Below, one piece after another: positions 19,305-48,209 of a DNA stretch of 64,000 bases (position 1 is the stretch's first letter; each line of letters opens with the position of its first letter). The stretch is taken from sequence record NC_048048.2, one strand, 5' to 3'. The notes beneath the pieces are model-generated. The model was not told the origin of the DNA, ran no database searches, and was given only the letters and a program-made list of their open reading frames with translations. The position numbers and the translations under genes were made by a program.

Positions 19305-19675
19305 ACCTGCATCAGAACATCGCCGACACGGTCGGCGCCAACGTTTCGACCCTGCTGCTGCGCACCGAATTCGAGAGCGCGGCCAACGACATCCTAGCCC
19401 TGCTGGGACCGCACGCTGAACTGGCCTGGGCCATTCATGCGGTCGAGCAGACCTTGCCCGGATGGGGCTGGTTGACGCGCAACGACGACGAGCAGGGCTA
19501 CTTCGCCAACATCATGACGCCGGATTTCGCCGGCGGGGTGGAGATCATCAACGGCTACGTCCTCGACTTCTCCGTCGGCGAGCGGTTCTACGCCTACGCC
19601 AAGACCCCAGGTGAGGCCCTGTTGAACGCTTTGGGTCAGGTCACCGTACGCCTGAAGAAGACTGCCGATGCCTAG
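19301..19675 (+). CDS. hypothetical protein
   Basis: ATGA start MNLHQN. Confidence 0.7.
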   Translation: MNLHQNIADTVGANVSTLLLRTEFESAANDILALLGPHAELAWAIHAVEQTLPGWGWLTRNDDEQGYFANIMTPDFAGGVEIINGYVLDFSVGERFYAYAKTPGEALLNALGQVTVRLKKTADA

Positions 19676-20852
19676 TCGTATCCTGATCCCGGCCGACCTG
19701 CTGCGCCTGCGCCAGGGCTTCCAGAGCATCGACCGCGACATTCGCTTCGTCGGCGGCTGCGTGCGCGACACCTTGTTCGGCCTCGTGCCCAAGGACATCG
19801 ACCTCTGCACCGACGCCTCGATCAACGAGATGATCCTGCTCGCCAGTCGTCTGGGGATCACGGTGATCCCGACCGGCGCCGAGCATGGCACCCTGACCTT
19901 CAAGCTCGACAGTGGCCTCTACGAGATCACCTGCCTGCGCGAGGAGACCAAGCACGACGGCCGCCGCGCCGAGTGCCGCTTCGGCCGAGACTGGGACAAG
20001 GACCTCTCGCGACGAGACCTGACCATCAACGCCATGGCCATGGATTTCGACGGCGTGATCTACGATCCGTTCGGCGGGCGGAAGGACCTGGAGCACGGTG
20101 TCGTCCGCTTCGTGGGCGACACCACCGATCGCATGCGCGAGGATTACCTGCGCATCCTGCGCTGGCTGCGCTTCCATGGTCGCTATGGTCGGGCGCCGAT
20201 CGACTTCCACGCCATGCTCGCCGCCCAGGACGTCCGCGAGGGGCTGTCGAAGCGGGACGTCGACGGATCGTTCCTGATCTCGCGTGAACGGGTCTGGGCC
20301 GAGATGGCCAAAATCTTCGCCGGCCCCCGCGTCGGCTACATCCTCCACTACCTCGTCCACATGCGCCTGGACGAGCACATCGACATGGTCGGCCCCTATA
20401 ACGTCAACCGTCTGGAGTGGGTGGCCAAGAAGACCGACGACTACATCGTCCGTCTCGTGGCGTTCATGACGTCGGTCGCCCAGGTCGAGGCGCTGGCCGA
20501 GGCCTGGAAGTGGAGCGTCGACGAGCGCAAGCGCGCCGTCTTCTTAGCAAAAGAGGTCTATGGCAGCCGTACACGCCTGGACTGGTTGGTGCTGATGGGG
20601 ATGGCGTCCAAGGCCTGGGCCGAGGACATCGCCCTCATTCGCGAGGATGAGGAGGCTTTCGAGACCCTGCGTGCATGGAATCCGCCCACCTTCCCGCTGC
20701 GGGGCCAAGACTTGCTGGACATAGGCTTCGCGCCCGGCCCGGCGATCGGCTACCATCTGGATGAACTGCGGGTCGCCTGGGCGCATGCCGACGGCCTCCT
20801 CACCAAAGAGCAACTGCTTCAAGGCCTCACGCCGGAGACCAACTATGGCTGA
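19668..20852 (+). CDS. cca: CCA-adding tRNA nucleotidyltransferase (class II, poly(A) polymerase superfamily)
   Basis: FVGGCVRD, DIDL, RRDLTINAM, EDYLRILRWLRFHGR, SRERVWAEM, FPLRGQDL. Confidence 0.9.
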   Translation: MPSRILIPADLLRLRQGFQSIDRDIRFVGGCVRDTLFGLVPKDIDLCTDASINEMILLASRLGITVIPTGAEHGTLTFKLDSGLYEITCLREETKHDGRRAECRFGRDWDKDLSRRDLTINAMAMDFDGVIYDPFGGRKDLEHGVVRFVGDTTDRMREDYLRILRWLRFHGRYGRAPIDFHAMLAAQDVREGLSKRDVDGSFLISRERVWAEMAKIFAGPRVGYILHYLVHMRLDEHIDMVGPYNVNRLEWVAKKTDDYIVRLVAFMTSVAQVEALAEAWKWSVDERKRAVFLAKEVYGSRTRLDWLVLMGMASKAWAEDIALIREDEEAFETLRAWNPPTFPLRGQDLLDIGFAPGPAIGYHLDELRVAWAHADGLLTKEQLLQGLTPETNYG

Positions 20853-24602: not shown

Positions 24603-25238
24603 ATGAACCAACCCGTCAAGCACCTCATCCTCCACGCCGTCGAAGACGCCGGCATCCAGGGCATGGTCCGCGCCGTCCTCGGCCCGGATTTCTCCTCGAT
24701 CCTGGTTCCGGCCGAGATGATCCACGAGGAATGGGACAACCCCGAGCCTGTCGCCGTTCTGCTTCAGCCGGTCTATAACGAAGACACCGGGCGCCTGGGC
24801 GTCGTGCTGGGTCGACGCGCGGTCGCGCCCAAGGTGGGCGAATGGGCGTTCCCCGGCGGCTTCATGCAACGCGGCGAGACGCCCGAGGAGGGCGCAGTGC
24901 GCGAGACCCAGGAAGAATGGGGCATCGCCGGCCTCTATGGCCACACCGCCCGTATCTGGAAGGTCTATCCCTCGACCGGCGCCAAGCCGCGTCTGCTGAT
25001 CTTCTGCGTCAACGGCCATACCTTGAAGGCTTCGGAAGTTCGCGAAATCCTCGGCGCCCAGAAGGGCGACGGCGAGATGAGCGAGTTCCAGGTCTTCTAT
25101 GACCCGATCGAGACGGCCTTCCCGATCCACACCACCGTCCTGGCGAAGTTCTTCGCCGAGGCCGGCGTGGGCGCGAAGGAATTCCCGATGAGCGGCTACG
25201 GGCTGATCGCCTCCCGCAGCCATCCCCCGCAACGCTAG
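24603..25238 (+). CDS. Nudix hydrolase
   Basis: WAFPGGFMQRGETPEEGAVRETQEEWGI Nudix box. Confidence 0.9.
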   Translation: MNQPVKHLILHAVEDAGIQGMVRAVLGPDFSSILVPAEMIHEEWDNPEPVAVLLQPVYNEDTGRLGVVLGRRAVAPKVGEWAFPGGFMQRGETPEEGAVRETQEEWGIAGLYGHTARIWKVYPSTGAKPRLLIFCVNGHTLKASEVREILGAQKGDGEMSEFQVFYDPIETAFPIHTTVLAKFFAEAGVGAKEFPMSGYGLIASRSHPPQR

Positions 25239-33460: not shown

Positions 33461-34098
33461 TCGGCGCGCTTGATCTGCTGCTACGCAAAGCCGGCGCCGT
33501 GCGCTTCTCGGTCAACGAGAACCGCAGCTTCTATGAGACAGCCGCGATCGACTTCCATAAGCACATGATGCTGCCGGAAGAATGGTCGAACACGATCGAG
33601 AAGACCATGGTCGAAACCCTGGGCGCCCAGAAGGATTCGCCCATCACGACGACCAAGATTTTCCTGCGCGACGAGGTTCAGGGCAAGGAGCGCGCCTTCA
33701 CCGCCGGCGTCAATCCCGCGCTCGTGATCGCCAGGGCTCTTGACCGCTGGCGTATCGAATCAGGCTGCCTCGATCCGATCACCGACTTCTCGGCCGACGA
33801 GACGCTGGAGTTGGAGCAGGCGATGATCTACCTGACGGTCGAGTCCGTCTCCTGGTACATCGACGGCAACGAGCATCTGCGAGACGGTGCGCGGACCTAC
33901 GCCGAGATCGTTCGGGACTACCCGGTCTCGTTTCCAACCTGGGTCGGAGCGCCCGTCGCCGACGACTACGCCGGCGACATCGTGATCCTGACCATCTATC
34001 CCGACACGCCGATCGGCTCCTATCGGATGGCGGCGGCGACGCTGCCCGAAGTCCTCCGGGCCGCCAACACCTTGATGAGAGACCTGCGCGGACAATGA
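33457..34098 (+). CDS. hypothetical protein
   Basis: 213 aa, coupled. Confidence 0.7.
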   Translation: MIGALDLLLRKAGAVRFSVNENRSFYETAAIDFHKHMMLPEEWSNTIEKTMVETLGAQKDSPITTTKIFLRDEVQGKERAFTAGVNPALVIARALDRWRIESGCLDPITDFSADETLELEQAMIYLTVESVSWYIDGNEHLRDGARTYAEIVRDYPVSFPTWVGAPVADDYAGDIVILTIYPDTPIGSYRMAAATLPEVLRAANTLMRDLRGQ

Positions 34099-34943
34099 GC
34101 CTCTTCGAAACCAAGGACGCATTTGGCGACCGCATGAAGGCCTATGAGAAGGTCGAGACCGGCCGCCGGTTCATGCCCGGCCTGCCGCTCTATGTCCGCC
34201 TGGATGGTCGCGGGTTTTCGCGCTTCACCAAGGGCATGGACAAGCCCTTCGACACCCGCATGACCGAGGCGATGGCCGAGACCACCCGCACCCTGGTCGC
34301 CAAGACTCACGCCTCCCTGGGCTACTGCCAGTCCGACGAGATCAGCTTGGTCTTCATGCCCAAGGACCAGATCAACGACTACTTCTTCGCCGGCAAGGTG
34401 CAGAAGATCGTTTCGGTCCTGGCCGGCCTGTGCTCGACGGTCTTCTACCGCGAGTTCGCCGTGCAATGCGAAGACCACGTCGCCAAACGTGGCGTCGAAC
34501 ATGCCGACCAGTTTCTGAAGCGGCTGCCGCATTTCGACGCGCGCGCCTTCCAGGTGCCGGTCCTCTACGAGGTCGCCAACGCTGTTCTCTGGCGCGTCAA
34601 GGACGCCGAACGCAACGCCGTGCAGATGGCGGCCCAGGCGGCCTATTCGCAGCGTGACCTTCACAAGCAATCGACCCGCAAGCTGCGCGAGATGATCGCC
34701 GAGGCCGGCATCGACTTCGAGGCCTATCCCAGGGCGGTGAAGTCAGGACGCTTCTATGCGCGCGTCACCGAGGAGCGGCAGACGCCCCCGGACATCCTGG
34801 CCAAGATGAAGGAGAAGGACCGCGCCAAGAACGCGACCATCACCCGCAGCGAGGTCCAGGAAATCATCCCCGAAGGGCCGATCACCTACCAGACGATCGC
34901 CGACCTCCTGAAGTTCGACCAGCCGCCGGCGGTGGCCCCGTGA
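34095..34943 (+). CDS. thg1: tRNA-His guanylyltransferase Thg1-like protein (3'-5' polymerase)
   Basis: DRMKAYE, VRLDGRGFSRFT, KPFD, YCQSDEISL, FDARAF, WRVKDAERN. Confidence 0.92.
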   Translation: MSLFETKDAFGDRMKAYEKVETGRRFMPGLPLYVRLDGRGFSRFTKGMDKPFDTRMTEAMAETTRTLVAKTHASLGYCQSDEISLVFMPKDQINDYFFAGKVQKIVSVLAGLCSTVFYREFAVQCEDHVAKRGVEHADQFLKRLPHFDARAFQVPVLYEVANAVLWRVKDAERNAVQMAAQAAYSQRDLHKQSTRKLREMIAEAGIDFEAYPRAVKSGRFYARVTEERQTPPDILAKMKEKDRAKNATITRSEVQEIIPEGPITYQTIADLLKFDQPPAVAP

Positions 34944-36406: not shown

Positions 36407-36455
36407 AGATAACTGTTGACACCTTAGTCGGCGCCGACTACCCATGACGCAACAG
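36407..36455 (+). promoter_or_regulatory. class A promoter within stem-loop, heading the NAD operon
   Basis: AGATAACTGTTGACA; CTGTTG/CAACAG arms; inner palindrome TAGTCGGCGCCGACTA. Confidence 0.8.
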
Positions 36456-36475
36456 CTTTCACCAGGGGAGTCCAC

Positions 36476-37075
36476 GTGACCTACGAATCCAAACTGAACC
36501 CGCCGGGCTTCGTCACCGAGGAGGGCGGTTTCCGCGACTACCTCCACGTCTGGATCAAGGGTGACGCCGACACCGAATTGGCCCTGGGCGTCAGCCTGGG
36601 CACGGACGAGGCCGACGAGCCGCCCTGCCTGCGCGAAGCCATCGCGGTGATCTCCGCCTTCGCGGCCGGCGTGATCATGAAGCAGCCGGGCTTTGCCTCC
36701 ATGAACGAGGAGCAGCGCGAATACGCTGTCCAGGGCGGCGTCTCCCAGCTTCTGATGGCGGCGATCCAATCGGCTGCTCCGACCTTCAGCCCCCACCCGC
36801 ACCTACTGCCGCCGCCAGAGCCGATCGAGGACGACCCCGATGCGGTCCAGGCCGTGGGTATCTGGGCCACACCCGGCGCCGAGGGCGGCTTCTACGCCGC
36901 GTTCGTCGACCATCCCGACACGATGCCGGTAGGCGCCATTCTGGCCGCCGCCGCGCTGGAAGCCGCCGCCGAAGGTTCGGACGAGGACGCCTACGACACC
37001 GCCCTGGTGCGTGCCGTCCAGGCCGACTTCAACAAGACGATCGACACCGCGCTGATGGTGGGCACCGTCCAGTGA
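36476..37075 (+). CDS. acidic hypothetical protein
   Basis: 199 aa, GGGGAG RBS. Confidence 0.7.
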   Translation: MTYESKLNPPGFVTEEGGFRDYLHVWIKGDADTELALGVSLGTDEADEPPCLREAIAVISAFAAGVIMKQPGFASMNEEQREYAVQGGVSQLLMAAIQSAAPTFSPHPHLLPPPEPIEDDPDAVQAVGIWATPGAEGGFYAAFVDHPDTMPVGAILAAAALEAAAEGSDEDAYDTALVRAVQADFNKTIDTALMVGTVQ

Positions 37076-37761
37076 TCCGCAGCATCGCCCTTCGCATCCC
37101 GACGCTGGCCCTCCTGGCCAGCGCCATCGTCTCGACCGCCCAGGCTGGTGATCTCGCCGGCTCGGTCAGCCTGACCAGTGCCTACATCTCGCGAGGCACC
37201 GACCAGAACGTCCTGAACGGTGCGGCGCTCCAGGGCTTCGTGACCTACAGCCACGGACCGTTCTACGTCAGCGCCTTCGCCTCGTCCATGAACTATGGCG
37301 AGGGCACGACCAAGGAACTCGACTTCTTCGGCGGGGTGCGCAAGAGCGCCGGCCCCTGGACCGTCGACCTCGGGTTCGCCAACATCAACTACCCCGACAA
37401 CCACACGCCGCTGAACTTCGTCGAGTACGACCTGAAGGTCGACCGCGCGATCGGCAAGGGCAATGTCGGGGTCTGGCTCGGCTACACCGACGCCTATTTC
37501 AACACCTATGGCCAGGGCGTCTGGACCGAGGCCCACGCCAGCTATCCGATCACACAGTCGGTATCGATCAGCGGCGCGGTCGCCAACCAGGACCTGCCCA
37601 ACAACTTCGACTACCGTACCTGGAACATCGGCCTGACCAAGGCCTTTGCCGGCGGTGTCAGTGCCGATCTGCGGTATAGCGACACCGATCGGCACGACCT
37701 GGACCCGCGCTGGAACACCTACGGCGCGCGGACCTCGCTGACCCTGACCAAGAGCTTCTAA
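37072..37761 (+). CDS. outer-membrane beta-barrel protein, TorF/TIGR02001 (Gcw_chp)-like putative porin
   Basis: Signal peptide (..STAQA-), GSVSLTSAYISRGTDQ...ALQG, ELDFFGG, alternating beta strands, C-terminal Phe (LTLTKSF). Confidence 0.8.
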   Translation: MIRSIALRIPTLALLASAIVSTAQAGDLAGSVSLTSAYISRGTDQNVLNGAALQGFVTYSHGPFYVSAFASSMNYGEGTTKELDFFGGVRKSAGPWTVDLGFANINYPDNHTPLNFVEYDLKVDRAIGKGNVGVWLGYTDAYFNTYGQGVWTEAHASYPITQSVSISGAVANQDLPNNFDYRTWNIGLTKAFAGGVSADLRYSDTDRHDLDPRWNTYGARTSLTLTKSF

Positions 37762-37771
37762 GGGGGACCCT

Positions 37772-38407
37772 ATGAGCCTGCTCGAAATCCTCGCCACCGC
37801 CGTCACGGTCGCCTGCGTCCTGCTGGCGGTCAAGCGTTCGACGTGGCAGTACCCTGTCGGGATCATCGGCACGATCCTGTTCTTCTTCGTCTTCTGGGGC
37901 GCCAAGCTCTACGCCAGCGCCGCGCTCCAGGTCTTCTTCACCTTCGTCCAGGTCTATGGCTGGTGGTACTGGACGCGCGGCGATCGCGGCAAGGCCCCGC
38001 CGATCACCACCTTCCCCCGAGACATCCTGGCCGCCGTCATCGTCGGCGGGGTCCTGCTCGCGTTCGCCCTAAGCGCGATCCTCAATCAGTTCGTCACGCC
38101 CAAGGTGCTGTTCTGGGATACGGCGATCTTCGGCCTGTCGATGGCCGCCCAGTTCCTGCTCGACCGCAAGAAGATCGAGAACTGGATCGTCTGGGGCGCC
38201 GTCAACGCCATCTCGGTCATCGTCTATTCCAACCAGGGCTTGAAGGTCGCCGCCATCCTCTACGCGGCCCTCTTCGTCAACGTCTTCTGGGGCTACTACG
38301 AATGGGCCAAGGCCAAGCGCGCCCAGAAGATCGTCTGGGACGCCGAGGCCAGGAAGTATCCGCCGGCGCCGCAGCATGAGCCCCAGACGGGAGACCTGCT
38401 GCCGTGA
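37772..38407 (+). CDS. pnuC: nicotinamide riboside transporter PnuC
   Basis: YPVGIIG...LYASAALQVFF...YGWWYW, AQFLLDRKKIENWIVWGAVN, GYYEW. Confidence 0.92.
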   Translation: MSLLEILATAVTVACVLLAVKRSTWQYPVGIIGTILFFFVFWGAKLYASAALQVFFTFVQVYGWWYWTRGDRGKAPPITTFPRDILAAVIVGGVLLAFALSAILNQFVTPKVLFWDTAIFGLSMAAQFLLDRKKIENWIVWGAVNAISVIVYSNQGLKVAAILYAALFVNVFWGYYEWAKAKRAQKIVWDAEARKYPPAPQHEPQTGDLLP

Positions 38408-39444
38408 GGTTCACCCAGATCGTTCCCGCCCACCCGTTCGAGGCCAAGCCCGAGAAGGGCTTCGTGCTGGGCAAGTTCATGCCGCCGACCGAGGGCCATC
38501 GCTTCCTCTGCGAGTTCGCGCGTGAATACTGCCAGAAGCTGACCATCCTGGTCTGCTCTCTGCCCGATGAGCCCATCGACGGCTTCCTGCGCTTCCAGTG
38601 GATGCGCGAGATGTTCCCCGACTGCCATGTCGTCTGGTGCCAGGAGGTCCTGCCGCAGGAACCGGTGGGCGAGGACCCCCAGTTCTGGGAGACCTGGGCC
38701 GGCGTCATCCAGAAGTACGGCAGCCGCTATGGCGAGCCCTACAAGCCCGACGTCGTCTTCGCCTCGGAGCCCTACGGCCACAAACTGGCCGCCAGCGTCG
38801 GCGCCCGGTTCGTACCATGCGATATCTCGCGGACGGCGCGCGACATCTCGGCGACCCGCATCCGCGCCCAGCCCCTGGCCAACTGGTCCTATATCCCCAA
38901 CGTCGTGCGTCCCCACTTCGTCAAGCGGGTGACCATGTTCGGCCCGGAAAGCAGCGGCAAGTCGACCCTGGCCTGCGCGCTGGCCAAGCTCTACGACACC
39001 CTCGTCGTGCCTGAGTACGGCCGCACCTACACCGAGCAGTTCGGAACCGACGTCGGCGCCGAGGACCTGATCCGCATCGTCCAGGGCCACCGCGCCAGCG
39101 TGACGGCCGCCAAGCGGCAGGCCAACCGCATCCTCTTCGAGGACACCGACCCGATCATGAGCGCGGTCTGGTCGGACATGCTGGGCGTGGCGCGCGACCC
39201 CTGGTTCGACAGCTTCGACGACAAGGCCGACCTCTATCTGCTCTGCGGCGTCGACATCCCCTGGGAAGACGACGGCACCCGCTACTTCCCGTCCCAGTCC
39301 GCCAGGGAGCGCTTCTATGGCCTCTGCAAGCTGGAACTGGAGCGTCGGGGATGCAATTACGTCGAGATCAAGGGGTCCATGCTGGAGCGCCGCGTGGACG
39401 CCATGAACGCCATCCAGAAGGCCTTTGGGATCGAGCCGTCATGA
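38404..39444 (+). CDS. nadR: NadR-like bifunctional NMN adenylyltransferase / ribosylnicotinamide kinase
   Basis: GKFMPPTEGH (T/HxGH), FASEPYG, ISATRIR, GPESSGKSTL (Walker A), EYGR, DTD, WEDDGTR; no HTH. Confidence 0.92.
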   Translation: MRFTQIVPAHPFEAKPEKGFVLGKFMPPTEGHRFLCEFAREYCQKLTILVCSLPDEPIDGFLRFQWMREMFPDCHVVWCQEVLPQEPVGEDPQFWETWAGVIQKYGSRYGEPYKPDVVFASEPYGHKLAASVGARFVPCDISRTARDISATRIRAQPLANWSYIPNVVRPHFVKRVTMFGPESSGKSTLACALAKLYDTLVVPEYGRTYTEQFGTDVGAEDLIRIVQGHRASVTAAKRQANRILFEDTDPIMSAVWSDMLGVARDPWFDSFDDKADLYLLCGVDIPWEDDGTRYFPSQSARERFYGLCKLELERRGCNYVEIKGSMLERRVDAMNAIQKAFGIEPS

Positions 39445-39830
39445 ACTTCACCTACTTGGGCATCCCCTACACCTCCAAGAACCCCGATCCGGTCGAGGCC
39501 GCCGCTGAGCGTGCCCGGCGAATGGAAGGGTTCTGGCAGGCCTGCGCCATGCTGATCGATCAGGGCGAAGAGGTCGTCTCGCCGATGACCCTGGAGCCGG
39601 CCCTGACGGTCGTCCCGGACCTGCCCTATGAGTGGCCGTTCTGGCAGCACTATTCGCGTCGGATGCTGGCCATCTGCAACAAGCTGGTGGTCCTCCAGTT
39701 GGACGGCTGGGACGTCTCGTCGGGCATCGCCGGCGAGGTCGAGGAAGCCAAGCGCCTGGGCCTGGAGATCGTCTACCTGCATCCGCAGGACGTCGAGACG
39801 TGGAAGCAGGAACGATCCCGTGGCGAGTAA
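39441..39830 (+). CDS. DUF1937 / nucleoside-2-deoxyribosyltransferase-like protein
   Basis: YLGIPYT...V.SP...LAICNKLVVLQLDGWDVSSGIAGEVEEAKRLGL. Confidence 0.7.
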   Translation: MNFTYLGIPYTSKNPDPVEAAAERARRMEGFWQACAMLIDQGEEVVSPMTLEPALTVVPDLPYEWPFWQHYSRRMLAICNKLVVLQLDGWDVSSGIAGEVEEAKRLGLEIVYLHPQDVETWKQERSRGE

Positions 39831-40068
39831 GCTACCCGCGACGAAGGCCGGGCGCGCGGCCTTCTCGATCATCCAAGGCGCGCTGGAGCCCCTGGGTTTC
39901 GGCATCGAGTTCGAGACCAACTCCAAGCACAACTTCGTCGTGGCCTCCCGACGCGGGCGGCGATGGACGTTCGGCATCTCCAAGGGCGGCAACGCGCGCG
40001 CCGACCACTATACCAACTACGCCAGGAAGTTCGCGCGCAGGGTCCTGGCCGAGGCCGCCGCGACCTAG
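39820..40068 (+). CDS. small basic protein, possible HicA-like fold
   Basis: LGFGIEFETNSKHNFVV...TFGISKG. Confidence 0.5.
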   Translation: MASKLPATKAGRAAFSIIQGALEPLGFGIEFETNSKHNFVVASRRGRRWTFGISKGGNARADHYTNYARKFARRVLAEAAAT

Positions 40069-42373: not shown

Positions 42374-42847
42374 ATGACCTGCATCGTCTACCGCGACGGC
42401 GTCCTGGTGGCCGATAGCTGGGTGCTCGACGTCTGGACCAAGATCGGTCGCTTTCCCAAGATCGCTAAGCGCGAAGGGGTGAACGGCACGATCTTGCTGG
42501 CCGCGTCGGGCGACTCCGGCTACTCCAAGAACTTCCTGGACTGGGGCCGAGGCCCTGGCCTGAAGGACTGGATCAAGAAGGGCGACGAGGTTCACGAGGG
42601 CATCCCGAACCTGGGCGAGGGCGATCGCACCGCCAACGGCATGCTGATCATGCCCGACGGCTCGTGCATCCGCTTTGATCCAGGCTCGCTGCCCTACGTG
42701 ATCAAGGCGCCGTTCTATGCCATGGGATCGGGCTGCTGGGTGGCGCTGGGCGCCCTGGAAGCCGGAGCCACCGCCGAGGAAGCCGTCCTGGCCGCCGAGA
42801 AGTGGGACGTTGGCACCAACGGTCCGCTCATCACCTTGAGGCACTGA
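42374..42847 (+). CDS. HslV/proteasome-beta-like Ntn-hydrolase (Thr peptidase)
   Basis: M-T-CIVYRDGVLVADS, AASGD, AMGSG, AVLAAEKWDVGTNG. Confidence 0.75.
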   Translation: MTCIVYRDGVLVADSWVLDVWTKIGRFPKIAKREGVNGTILLAASGDSGYSKNFLDWGRGPGLKDWIKKGDEVHEGIPNLGEGDRTANGMLIMPDGSCIRFDPGSLPYVIKAPFYAMGSGCWVALGALEAGATAEEAVLAAEKWDVGTNGPLITLRH

Positions 42848-47446: not shown

Positions 47447-48209
47447 CCTCGCCGACGCCTTCGTAGAGCGCTATGGCGCCGACCTCTTCGACGAACTGTG
47501 CGAAGGCGTCCTGTCACCTGAAGCCTATCCCCACGTCCGGGTCACCGAGACCGAAAGGCACAATGCCTGCAACCACACCTATCGTGGCGAGATCGTCCGC
47601 GAGGGCCAGGAGACGGTGTATTTCTCCCTCGATAGTGGGGATTGGAACGGAACCTGCCTGCGCTACTTCAGCGAGGAGACTTCCGAAGACTACGAGCGAG
47701 GTCATCGGGCCTATGTCTTTGATCTTAATCCCGCCCGCTTGGCCGTCCCCGTCGCCGAGGTCCGCCTGAAGGTGTCGATCTGGCTCAACAACTACCTGTC
47801 GGTCACCATGACCAACGGCGAATTCAAGGACAAGGAGCGCGGCTACGGCTATGACTCCACCTTCGCCCCTGGCGTGGTCACCGACAGACACTATCGCGCC
47901 TACGCCGCCTCCCGCGATCTGATCCCGACCTCGACCTGGATTCCTGAGACCATCGAGCGGGTTTCCACGGCCGAGTTCAACAACGCCAGGATCGAATACG
48001 AGAAGGCCTCCGATATCCGCTTCCGCAAGCAGTTTCGCGACAAGGTCGAGCCGCAGCACGAGGAGGCCCTGAGCCTGCGCGCTGGCGAGTTCTTCCGGCT
48101 GCTGTCGATCCGCTTCGCCAGTGAGGGGCGCGAGAACGCCGCCGCCCTGGCGAGGGACGTTTCCCAAGCGTGGCTTGACACGAAGAACGATTCACCAAGT
48201 TCTGCTTGA
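47439..48209 (+). CDS. hypothetical protein
   Basis: 256 aa. Confidence 0.7.
   Translation: MTDLADAFVERYGADLFDELCEGVLSPEAYPHVRVTETERHNACNHTYRGEIVREGQETVYFSLDSGDWNGTCLRYFSEETSEDYERGHRAYVFDLNPARLAVPVAEVRLKVSIWLNNYLSVTMTNGEFKDKERGYGYDSTFAPGVVTDRHYRAYAASRDLIPTSTWIPETIERVSTAEFNNARIEYEKASDIRFRKQFRDKVEPQHEEALSLRAGEFFRLLSIRFASEGRENAAALARDVSQAWLDTKNDSPSSA

Follow-up and report, generated by a model that had tools for sequence, protein, structure and literature searches.

How does a phage that rebuilds nicotinamide adenine dinucleotide (NAD+) from imported nicotinamide riboside (NR) obtain this precursor across the outer membrane of its host? Bacteria commonly resist phages by depleting NAD+, and three pathways by which phages rebuild it have been described so far. 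In one of them, NAD+ reconstitution pathway 3 (NARP3), import depends on external NR being present in the periplasm, which is a safe assumption in Escherichia coli and not in porin-poor bacteria. The question is raised by a locus of Caulobacter phage CcrSC (NC_048048.2 / MH588547.2; genus Bertelyvirus; 317,489 bp; host C. vibrioides CB15), in which a gene for an outer-membrane beta-barrel of the TorF family stands directly upstream of pnuC and nadR. The stretch analysed here (hereafter, the window) comprises 64,000 nucleotides and is 100% identical to this record, and a window position equals the CcrSC record position minus 186000. An initial annotation of the window had described the genes at 36407-39830 as a complete operon for the import and salvage of NAD+ precursors. 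We consider it fairly probable that the core of the locus is a three-gene, two-membrane import-and-salvage module, which is composed of a TorF-family outer-membrane channel, PnuC, and a NadR enzyme without the helix-turn-helix (HTH) domain.

Linkage of the barrel gene with pnuC and nadR

The comparison of gene neighbourhoods shows that the link of the barrel to pnuC-nadR is clade-specific, exclusive, and selectively maintained, and it is new as far as the literature and databases show. In a collection of 5.8 billion proteins, the barrel had 16 close relatives with 52-82% identity. The phage barrel clade (17 proteins) was recovered in one split with full support in the Shimodaira-Hasegawa approximate likelihood ratio test (SH-aLRT 100) and was set apart by a long branch. 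Among cultured phages, the barrel was confined to 11 Bertelyvirus records, all of which have the barrel-pnuC-nadR arrangement. In addition, we read the metagenomic context of every clade member whose contig extended far enough to reveal the neighbouring genes. The barrel was followed by zero to two small unrelated genes and then by pnuC and nadR in all eight contexts. One of the eight contigs (L008, 114 kb) was a Bertelyvirus relative, and the seven others carried a larger NAD island. The initial annotation had proposed to check the synteny of porin-pnuC-nadR-DUF1937 across phages; its porin-pnuC-nadR part held in the metagenomic contexts as well as in the cultured records. No phage-clade barrel was seen in any other setting among the contexts read. 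Meanwhile, IMG/VR yielded CcrSC and CcrBL9 themselves and no independent viral contigs.

The seven islands (L004, L006, L007, L009, L011, L085, and L086; GC content 52-62%) encode NadM-Nudix, PncB, PncA, NadE, the porin, PnuC, and NadR, and some of them also encode a histidine phosphatase or a Macro-domain protein. They are phage-like, with a tail-fibre gene, homing endonucleases, and a protein common to jumbo phages. The homing endonucleases sit between the genes of the NAD islands, and the small open reading frames (ORFs) that separate porin from pnuC in several islands are mutually unrelated. Furthermore, the gene trees of PnuC, NadR, and the porin disagree among these islands, and the two types into which the PnuC proteins divide match neither the groups of the porin nor those of NadR. 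The adjacency of the three genes is still kept, at GC contents of 52-64%. The congruence of the three gene trees was significant over 11 loci; this result was driven by the split between the Bertelyviruses and the rest, and the congruence was not significant within the seven uncultured islands. We also noticed an ORF of 73-77 aa between pnuC and nadR in three islands (L085:6178-6399, L086:3659-3892, and L011:7568-7798), which is absent from CcrSC. The starts of the L085 and L086 proteins are clearly similar, and that of L011 is less alike by eye.

The bacterial loci served as controls. None of the 71 bacterial-type TorF loci from metagenomes (407 kb) had a match to the hidden Markov models (HMMs) of PnuC or NadR, and the same HMMs recovered eight of the eight positive loci. 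When the phage clade was compared with the 44 bacterial-type loci of at least 4 kb, the Fisher test of the TorF-pnuC-nadR linkage gave P = 1.3e-9. In addition, three chromosomal TorF genes of Caulobacterales are flanked by an SDR gene on one side and an MFS/TonB-receptor/GntR cluster on the other, a conserved setting with no NAD genes. The bacterial nadR loci were inspected from the other side. The pnuC gene was directly upstream in 48 of 58 loci, no porin HMM match was found within about 6 kb in any of the 58, and no TonB receptor was found beside pnuC in these loci. Their flanks were housekeeping genes (GlnD, PGK, and aldolase; clpP-clpX-lon in L016). A bacterial origin of the whole triad was considered and rejected: porin-clade patterns found no relative in 185,579 species genomes, and the 58 nadR loci were without a porin.

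It could be argued that the barrel serves to remodel the outer membrane or to exclude superinfecting phages, or that it is a moron of host origin, and that its place beside pnuC is a historical accident. Phage outer-membrane barrels of other families do exist (such as the 'outer membrane protein' of phiAS5), and the barrel is derived from a stand-alone chromosomal gene of Caulobacterales that has no link to NAD genes. However, the adjacency has been kept in eight of eight islands and in 11 phage genomes despite the incongruent trees, the homing endonucleases, and the intervening small ORFs, and the contexts read offered no exception. Furthermore, the ratio of nonsynonymous to synonymous substitution rates (dN/dS) of the barrel is 0.20-0.37, which is similar to those of pnuC and nadR and indicates purifying selection of a comparable kind. 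We regard this alternative as very unlikely. Judged from its clade-specific and exclusive synteny, the added outer-membrane barrel appears to be functionally tied to PnuC-NadR, as the initial annotation had supposed.

Family, fold, and clade-specific residues of the barrel

The barrel scored above the cutoffs of two family models, namely TIGR02001 'TorF family putative porin' (109.2 bits; cutoff 47.15) and Gcw_chp PF09694 (71.5 bits; cutoff 24). Its label in RefSeq is merely 'Conserved hypothetical protein 2001'. The N-terminus is hydrophobic and signal-peptide-like and ends in AQA before GD, and the C-terminus reads ...TKSF. The AlphaFold2 (AF2) model, built from an 18-sequence alignment, is a 12-stranded barrel after the signal peptide, with a mean predicted local distance difference test score (pLDDT) of 89.1 and a predicted template modelling score (pTM) of 0.79. 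In addition, the hydrophobicity alternates along every predicted strand. The top template modelling scores (TM-scores) of the model were obtained with KdgM 4fqe (0.62/0.81; root-mean-square deviation, rmsd, 3.4 Å), VhGalP 8xua (0.62/0.67), and NanC 2wjr (0.57/0.63). Thus, the predicted structure resembles the KdgM/NanC family at the level of the fold only, both having the 12-stranded shape of solute-specific channels. Membership in that family was rejected: there is no match to the Pfam KdgM model, the identity is 9-12%, and the only Pfam matches are to Gcw_chp and, below threshold, to Porin_4. Other phage-encoded beta-barrel outer-membrane proteins can be found in BFVD, such as E1A206 (Aeromonas phage phiAS5 'Outer membrane protein') and several porin-like proteins of uncultured Caudovirales. 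The TM-scores of these phage-encoded proteins to the barrel model reach 0.58.

More than 1,700 TorF/TIGR02001 relatives were retrieved. The nearest proteins outside the phage clade are TorF porins encoded on the chromosomes of Caulobacter, Brevundimonas, Phenylobacterium, and Asticcacaulis, with 30-37% identity. Their profile scores are at most 215 bits, whereas the scores within the phage clade are at least 343 bits. The TorF proteins of Caulobacterales have the same length, the signal peptide, the C-terminal Phe, and many barrel residues in common with the phage barrel. However, about 27 positions are fixed in the phage clade unlike in the Caulobacterales TorF, and most of these positions face the lumen or lie in loops. 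By strand periodicity, which was used to assign the facing, 13 clade-fixed positions point to the lumen and 4 to the lipid; the corresponding background counts are 66 and 67 (binomial P = 0.025).

PnuC and NadR as a known two-gene module

The PnuC protein matched PF04973 (3.5e-47) and the equivalog model TIGR01528 (94.1 bits; cutoff 42.45). A search of the PDB with the single sequence gave no match. The profile of the phage PnuC proteins did match, and its sole hit was 4QTN (3e-18), the NR transporter PnuC of N. mucosa. Four NR-coordinating residues have been listed for 4QTN (PMC13464706). By our own mapping, which uses a numbering offset of 25, Q60, Q127, and N145 of the phage protein align with three of these four residues, and all three are invariant in the phage family.

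The nadR gene has the same orientation as pnuC and overlaps it by 4 nt (GTGA) at 38404-38407. NadR matched TIGR01526 (3.5e-71; 240 bits, below the 341-bit cutoff) and AAA_28 (4.5e-28). It could be aligned from end to end with the H. influenzae NadR 1LW7 (residues 18-340 versus 4-344; 2.2e-34), and its residues 17-312 could be aligned with 9x6f, deposited as a nicotinamide-nucleotide adenylyltransferase (2.3e-32). The motifs TxGH (TEGH), ISATxIR, GxESSGK of the Walker A (GPESSGKST), xDTD/N, and WxDDGxR are all kept. In addition, the match begins at position 62 of the 411-position full-length model PRK08099, so the N-terminal HTH is missing. NadR homologues were found in 752 of 50,697 phage records.

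The name NARP3 was given to the pair of PnuC-like Bas30_87 and HTH-less NadR Bas30_86 of Escherichia phage TrudiRoth (PMC13464706, Sci Adv, 12 Aug 2026). The NARP3 transporter binds NR, and the NARP3 enzyme turns NR into NAD+ (PMC13464706). The pair restores NAD+, rescues plating 10^3- to 10^4-fold against Sir2-HerA, and substantially counteracts DSR1 (PMC13464706). Such an NAD+ pathway had already been suggested by Osterman et al. (bioRxiv 10.1101/2024.02.11.579819). CcrSC likewise has a PnuC-type transporter adjoining a NadR with nicotinamide mononucleotide (NMN) adenylyltransferase and ribosylnicotinamide kinase domains. The TxGH variant (TEGH in CcrSC and TRGH in 9x6f), the Walker A, and WxDDGxR are common to both systems, and the predicted chemistry, from NR to NMN to NAD+, would be the same. 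The initial annotation had read this logic from the two genes, and it holds, with the identities and motifs intact and NARP3 as a precedent. As far as homology can tell, the pnuC-nadR pair of CcrSC belongs to a module already known for salvage and counter-defence. The pathway had also been put forward as a candidate third anti-NADase strategy. This strategy is established and not new, because the NARP3 experiments and the proposal of Osterman et al. precede it.

There are also differences from NARP3. The CcrSC NadR is only about 29% identical to the NadR proteins of T5-like phages, its gene order is pnuC and then nadR, and its module has a third, outer-membrane component that NARP3 does not have. 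NARP3 was described as largely limited to phages of Enterobacteriaceae (PMC13464706), and the words porin, outer membrane, and Caulobacter do not occur in that paper.

Origin of the three genes and host background

The closest bacterial NadR is 61% identical and is encoded on a contig of a Caulobacter metagenome-assembled genome (CAZRPD010000237.1, L016). On this contig, a chromosomal pnuC-nadR pair and a gene for a HAD hydrolase separate clpP from clpX-lon. This lineage is a likely source of the phage pnuC-nadR. Since the nearest TorF proteins are from Caulobacterales and the nearest NadR is from Caulobacter, both halves of the triad seem to come from the host lineage. To judge from these relatives, the triad looks as if it was assembled in phages.

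The genome of C. crescentus reportedly encodes neither OmpF/C-type general porins nor substrate-specific ones, and the bacterium depends on 67 TonB-dependent receptors (PMC4659666). In such a porin-poor host, the outer membrane would then be the limiting step of an import-based NAD+ route. We tentatively propose, at a little short of an even chance, that the TorF barrel serves as a third, dedicated part of a pathway that reconstitutes NAD+ from NR. Phages would have put this pathway together from an outer-membrane channel and a pnuC-nadR pair of the host lineage, and it would have evolved as hosts such as Caulobacter lack general diffusion porins.

Proposed pathway and substrate of the barrel

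Under this proposal, the barrel would be exported by Sec and inserted by the beta-barrel assembly machinery (BAM) into the Caulobacter outer membrane during infection. External NR, and possibly NMN too, would reach the periplasm through the barrel, and NR would then cross the inner membrane via PnuC. NadR would phosphorylate NR to NMN, which would trap it, and would then adenylate NMN to NAD+. NAD+ would thus be maintained or rebuilt in the infected cell, and this may counter NAD+-depleting defences, as the two-gene NARP3 of an E. coli phage does, and/or support phage metabolism. For the substrate of the barrel, its insertion during infection, and its anti-defence role in Caulobacter, this scheme is what we infer from the comparisons above.

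The same two-membrane logic is found in H. influenzae, where OmpP2 admits NAD, NMN, and NR, processing takes place in the periplasm (NadN and e(P4)), and PnuC and NadR complete the route. OmpP2 is of the general-porin type and is not known to be related to TorF. Furthermore, the H. influenzae genes are dispersed and need periplasmic enzymes for NAD and NMN, whereas the CcrSC module is viral and clustered and encodes no secreted enzyme.

The barrel might instead be a channel for another pyridine precursor (nicotinamide, nicotinate, NMN, or NAD+) or for broader solutes, with the specificity for NR residing in PnuC only. In the uncultured islands, the porin gene comes directly after pncA or nadE and before pnuC. 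The 12-stranded KdgM and NanC channels take acidic sugars, so small barrels can vary in specificity, and OmpP2 is an example of a channel open to several of these precursors. However, neither a nucleotidase nor a pyrophosphatase of the periplasm is encoded in the islands. In L004, the gene of a His_Phos_1 protein separates porin from pnuC; this protein was considered as an e(P4)-like periplasmic NMN phosphatase and was rejected, as it starts with the RHG motif and is without a signal peptide. Moreover, no PncA, PncB, or NadE was found in CcrSC by tblastn, yet the barrel is retained there with pnuC-nadR alone. We think that a channel of this other kind is unlikely.

Several points weigh against the reading of the barrel as a dedicated component of NR uptake. 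The eight metagenomic contexts are few and phylogenetically related, and the porin of the islands could serve the uptake of nicotinamide or nicotinate. A literature search on TorF, TIGR02001, and Gcw_chp returned only noise and no characterised member. The mean net charge of the mature barrel is -7.6 in the phage clade and -15 in bacterial TorF; an argument for cation selectivity was dropped, as the charge gives no pointer to a cationic substrate. The host genus has its own chromosomal TorF porins, so a phage copy is not obviously needed. In addition, bacterial pnuC-nadR pairs in the same order occur without a linked channel. Both facts weaken the rationale of the porin-poor host. Finally, 741 other phage records have a NadR without a TorF homologue, so the two-gene module suffices elsewhere.

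If the reading of a dedicated channel is right, a complete uptake system for two membranes can be encoded by phages, as a viral import route across both Gram-negative membranes, and selection in the metabolic arms race would also act on envelope permeability. The TorF/TIGR02001 family, whose members are named putative porins by NCBI, would gain a first substrate or functional handle.

Other NAD genes of CcrSC

CcrSC also encodes a pair of NadV/Nampt-like and NadM-Nudix proteins on the minus strand, 51 kb upstream and outside the window (record 168499-171101; L083:18499-21101). The gp232c protein matched PRK09198 at 1.3e-119 (399.9 bits, just under the 405-bit cutoff), and gp234c matched the NadM-Nudix models at 1e-68, below the cutoff. 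In GenBank, they are named nicotinamide phosphoribosyltransferase and NadM/ADP-ribose pyrophosphatase, respectively. This pair appears to be of the same type as NARP2 (Nampt/NadV and Nmnat), which is found, for example, in Vibrio phage KVP40. NARP2 recycles intracellular nicotinamide and is without NR import, unlike the pnuC-nadR locus. The initial annotation had set the import route against NARP2; the route is indeed distinct, but the phage has a probable pair of the NARP2 type as well. Since both loci are encoded, CcrSC would combine nicotinamide recycling with NR import. A stand-alone MutT/NUDIX hydrolase gene is present at 24603-25238 of the window, and in a tblastn search it weakly matched the Nudix half of an island NadM-Nudix protein.

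The module could also be a general auxiliary NAD+ supply for a large phage with a heavy nucleotide and redox demand and have no counter-defence purpose. Besides NadV and NadM-Nudix, CcrSC encodes a ribonucleotide reductase, a thymidylate synthase, and many tRNAs (about 30). NAD synthesis clusters that include pnuC are common in jumbo phages (PMC11662467). Furthermore, the Preiss-Handler set of the uncultured islands (PncA, PncB, and NadE) looks biosynthetic and not like a minimal antidote. On the other hand, PnuC and NadR of TrudiRoth did rescue plating against Sir2-HerA and DSR1 (PMC13464706), by the factors given above, and the auxiliary and counter-defence roles are mutually compatible. We hold a purely auxiliary supply to be possible but doubtful.

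Gene layout and promoter region

The five ORFs proposed in the initial annotation are all present on the plus strand, and the identities given there are correct (Table 1). Three of the five genes have informative names in RefSeq, which are PnuC-like transporter, nicotinamide-nucleotide adenylyltransferase, and nucleoside 2-deoxyribosyltransferase (NDT).

Table 1. Position of the genes and upstream elements of the CcrSC locus in the window
Feature	Position	Strand	Basis or remark
Promoter-like element: TTGACA 36416-36421, 16-nt spacer, CTACC block 36438-36442	36416-36442	+	Conservation; putative promoter function
Shine-Dalgarno-like AGGGGAG	36464-36470	+	Upstream of the acidic-protein gene
Acidic protein, 199 aa, pI 4.06	36476-37075	+	Tandem DUF5076-like (putative); without signal peptide
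TorF/Gcw_chp outer-membrane beta-barrel, 229 aa	37072-37761	+	Family HMMs; AF2 model (predicted)
PnuC-type inner-membrane nicotinamide riboside transporter, 211 aa	37772-38407	+	PF04973, TIGR01528
NadR-type NMN adenylyltransferase and ribosylnicotinamide kinase, without HTH, 346 aa	38404-39444	+	TIGR01526, AAA_28
DUF1937 protein, 129 aa, NDT/TIR-like flavodoxin fold	39441-39830	+	PF09152

All five genes are tightly coupled, and they are kept in every sequenced Bertelyvirus. From 5' to 3', the first two genes overlap in GTGA, a 10-nt gap precedes pnuC, and the last two junctions are GTGA and ATGA. Thus, the coupling claimed for a complete operon is present. However, its 3' end was placed at 39830, and the following gene (39820-40068) shares 11 nt with the DUF1937 gene, so this position is no operon boundary. 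A terminator search past 39830 gave nothing convincing, with matches at chance level.

A scan for sigma-70 promoters of the E. coli type called no promoter upstream of the acidic-protein gene. In the alignment of the upstream regions of CcrSC, CcrBL9, RB23, and L008, the GTTGAC and CTACC blocks and the GGAG ribosome-binding site are all invariant, and the spacer between the two blocks is different in each of the four genomes. The TTGACA/CTACC motif has one occurrence in the window. The conserved blocks are presumably a promoter of the Caulobacter type. Hence the promoter of the initial annotation is not seen by an E. coli-type scan and does appear as a conserved element across four diverged Bertelyvirus-like genomes, with a putative function. 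Inside the spacer, there is a perfect 14-bp palindrome, AGTCGGCGCCGACT, at 36426-36439, which occurs once in the window. It was considered as an operator; it is not kept in CcrBL9, RB23, or L008, so it is probably no operator.

Acidic protein and DUF1937 protein

The acidic protein had no match in Pfam and NCBIfam. It matched its L008 homologue by BLASTP (1e-8), and the L008 homologue matched DUF5076 at 1.4e-7. On this basis, the acidic protein looks like a tandem repeat of a DUF5076-like domain. Its sole homologue in the collection of 5.8 billion proteins is that of CcrBL9. The protein is fast-evolving (dN/dS 0.32-1.0), confined to Bertelyviruses, and absent from the uncultured islands. This distribution speaks against its membership in the NAD module, in which it had been included, and it is probably outside this module.

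The DUF1937 protein matched PF09152 (45.7 bits; cutoff 23; 1.2e-11) and DUF4406 (8.9e-06), and its AF2 model has a pLDDT of 96.6. A single-sequence search of the PDB gave no match. The profile search did match 1T1J, the structural-genomics entry of the family (1.1e-20), and the model has TM-scores of 0.75-0.80 and an rmsd of 1.9 Å to this structure. The resemblance to NDT, DNPH1, MilB, and TIR is weak, with Foldseek E-values of 0.02-0.15 for NDT, DNPH1, and MilB. Residues S93, G95, and E99 (S-x-G-x3-E motif) are invariant in 58 homologues, and we take this motif to be reminiscent of the catalytic Glu motif of NDT and DNPH1. The RefSeq name would place the protein in the NDT family, which we rejected, as there is no PF05014 match and the profile matched NDT 7M5H only at E = 0.11. 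Therefore, the NDT fold suggested by the initial annotation stands for the likeness of fold and motif and not for membership in the NDT sequence family.

The DUF1937 gene is present in the Bertelyvirus-like L008. It is absent from all seven of the other islands and is found in phiCbK-type phages that are without pnuC or nadR, so it lies outside the conserved module. Because of their distributions outside the triad, we treat both the acidic protein and the DUF1937 protein as neighbours, which may be co-transcribed with the module. As a hint to the contrary, the NAD island of Sinorhizobium phage Phosso includes an NDT-like gene (Nuc_deoxyri_tr2). Meanwhile, CcrSC has a second gene of the NDT fold on the minus strand (record about 182206-182634; L083:32206-32634), and its product is 36% identical to the Phosso protein.

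Some other genes surround the locus. A Thg1-like tRNA-His guanylyltransferase (PF04446, 1.6e-30) is encoded two genes upstream, at 34095-34943 of the window, and is kept in CcrBL9, RB23, and L008, and a tRNA nucleotidyltransferase is encoded at 19668-20852. CcrSC has three genes of HslV-family peptidases, one in the window (42374-42847) and two at record positions 764-1204 and 47538-47969. In addition, a TerD/tellurite-resistance-like cluster with an integral membrane protein is located outside the window, at record positions 177060-180595.

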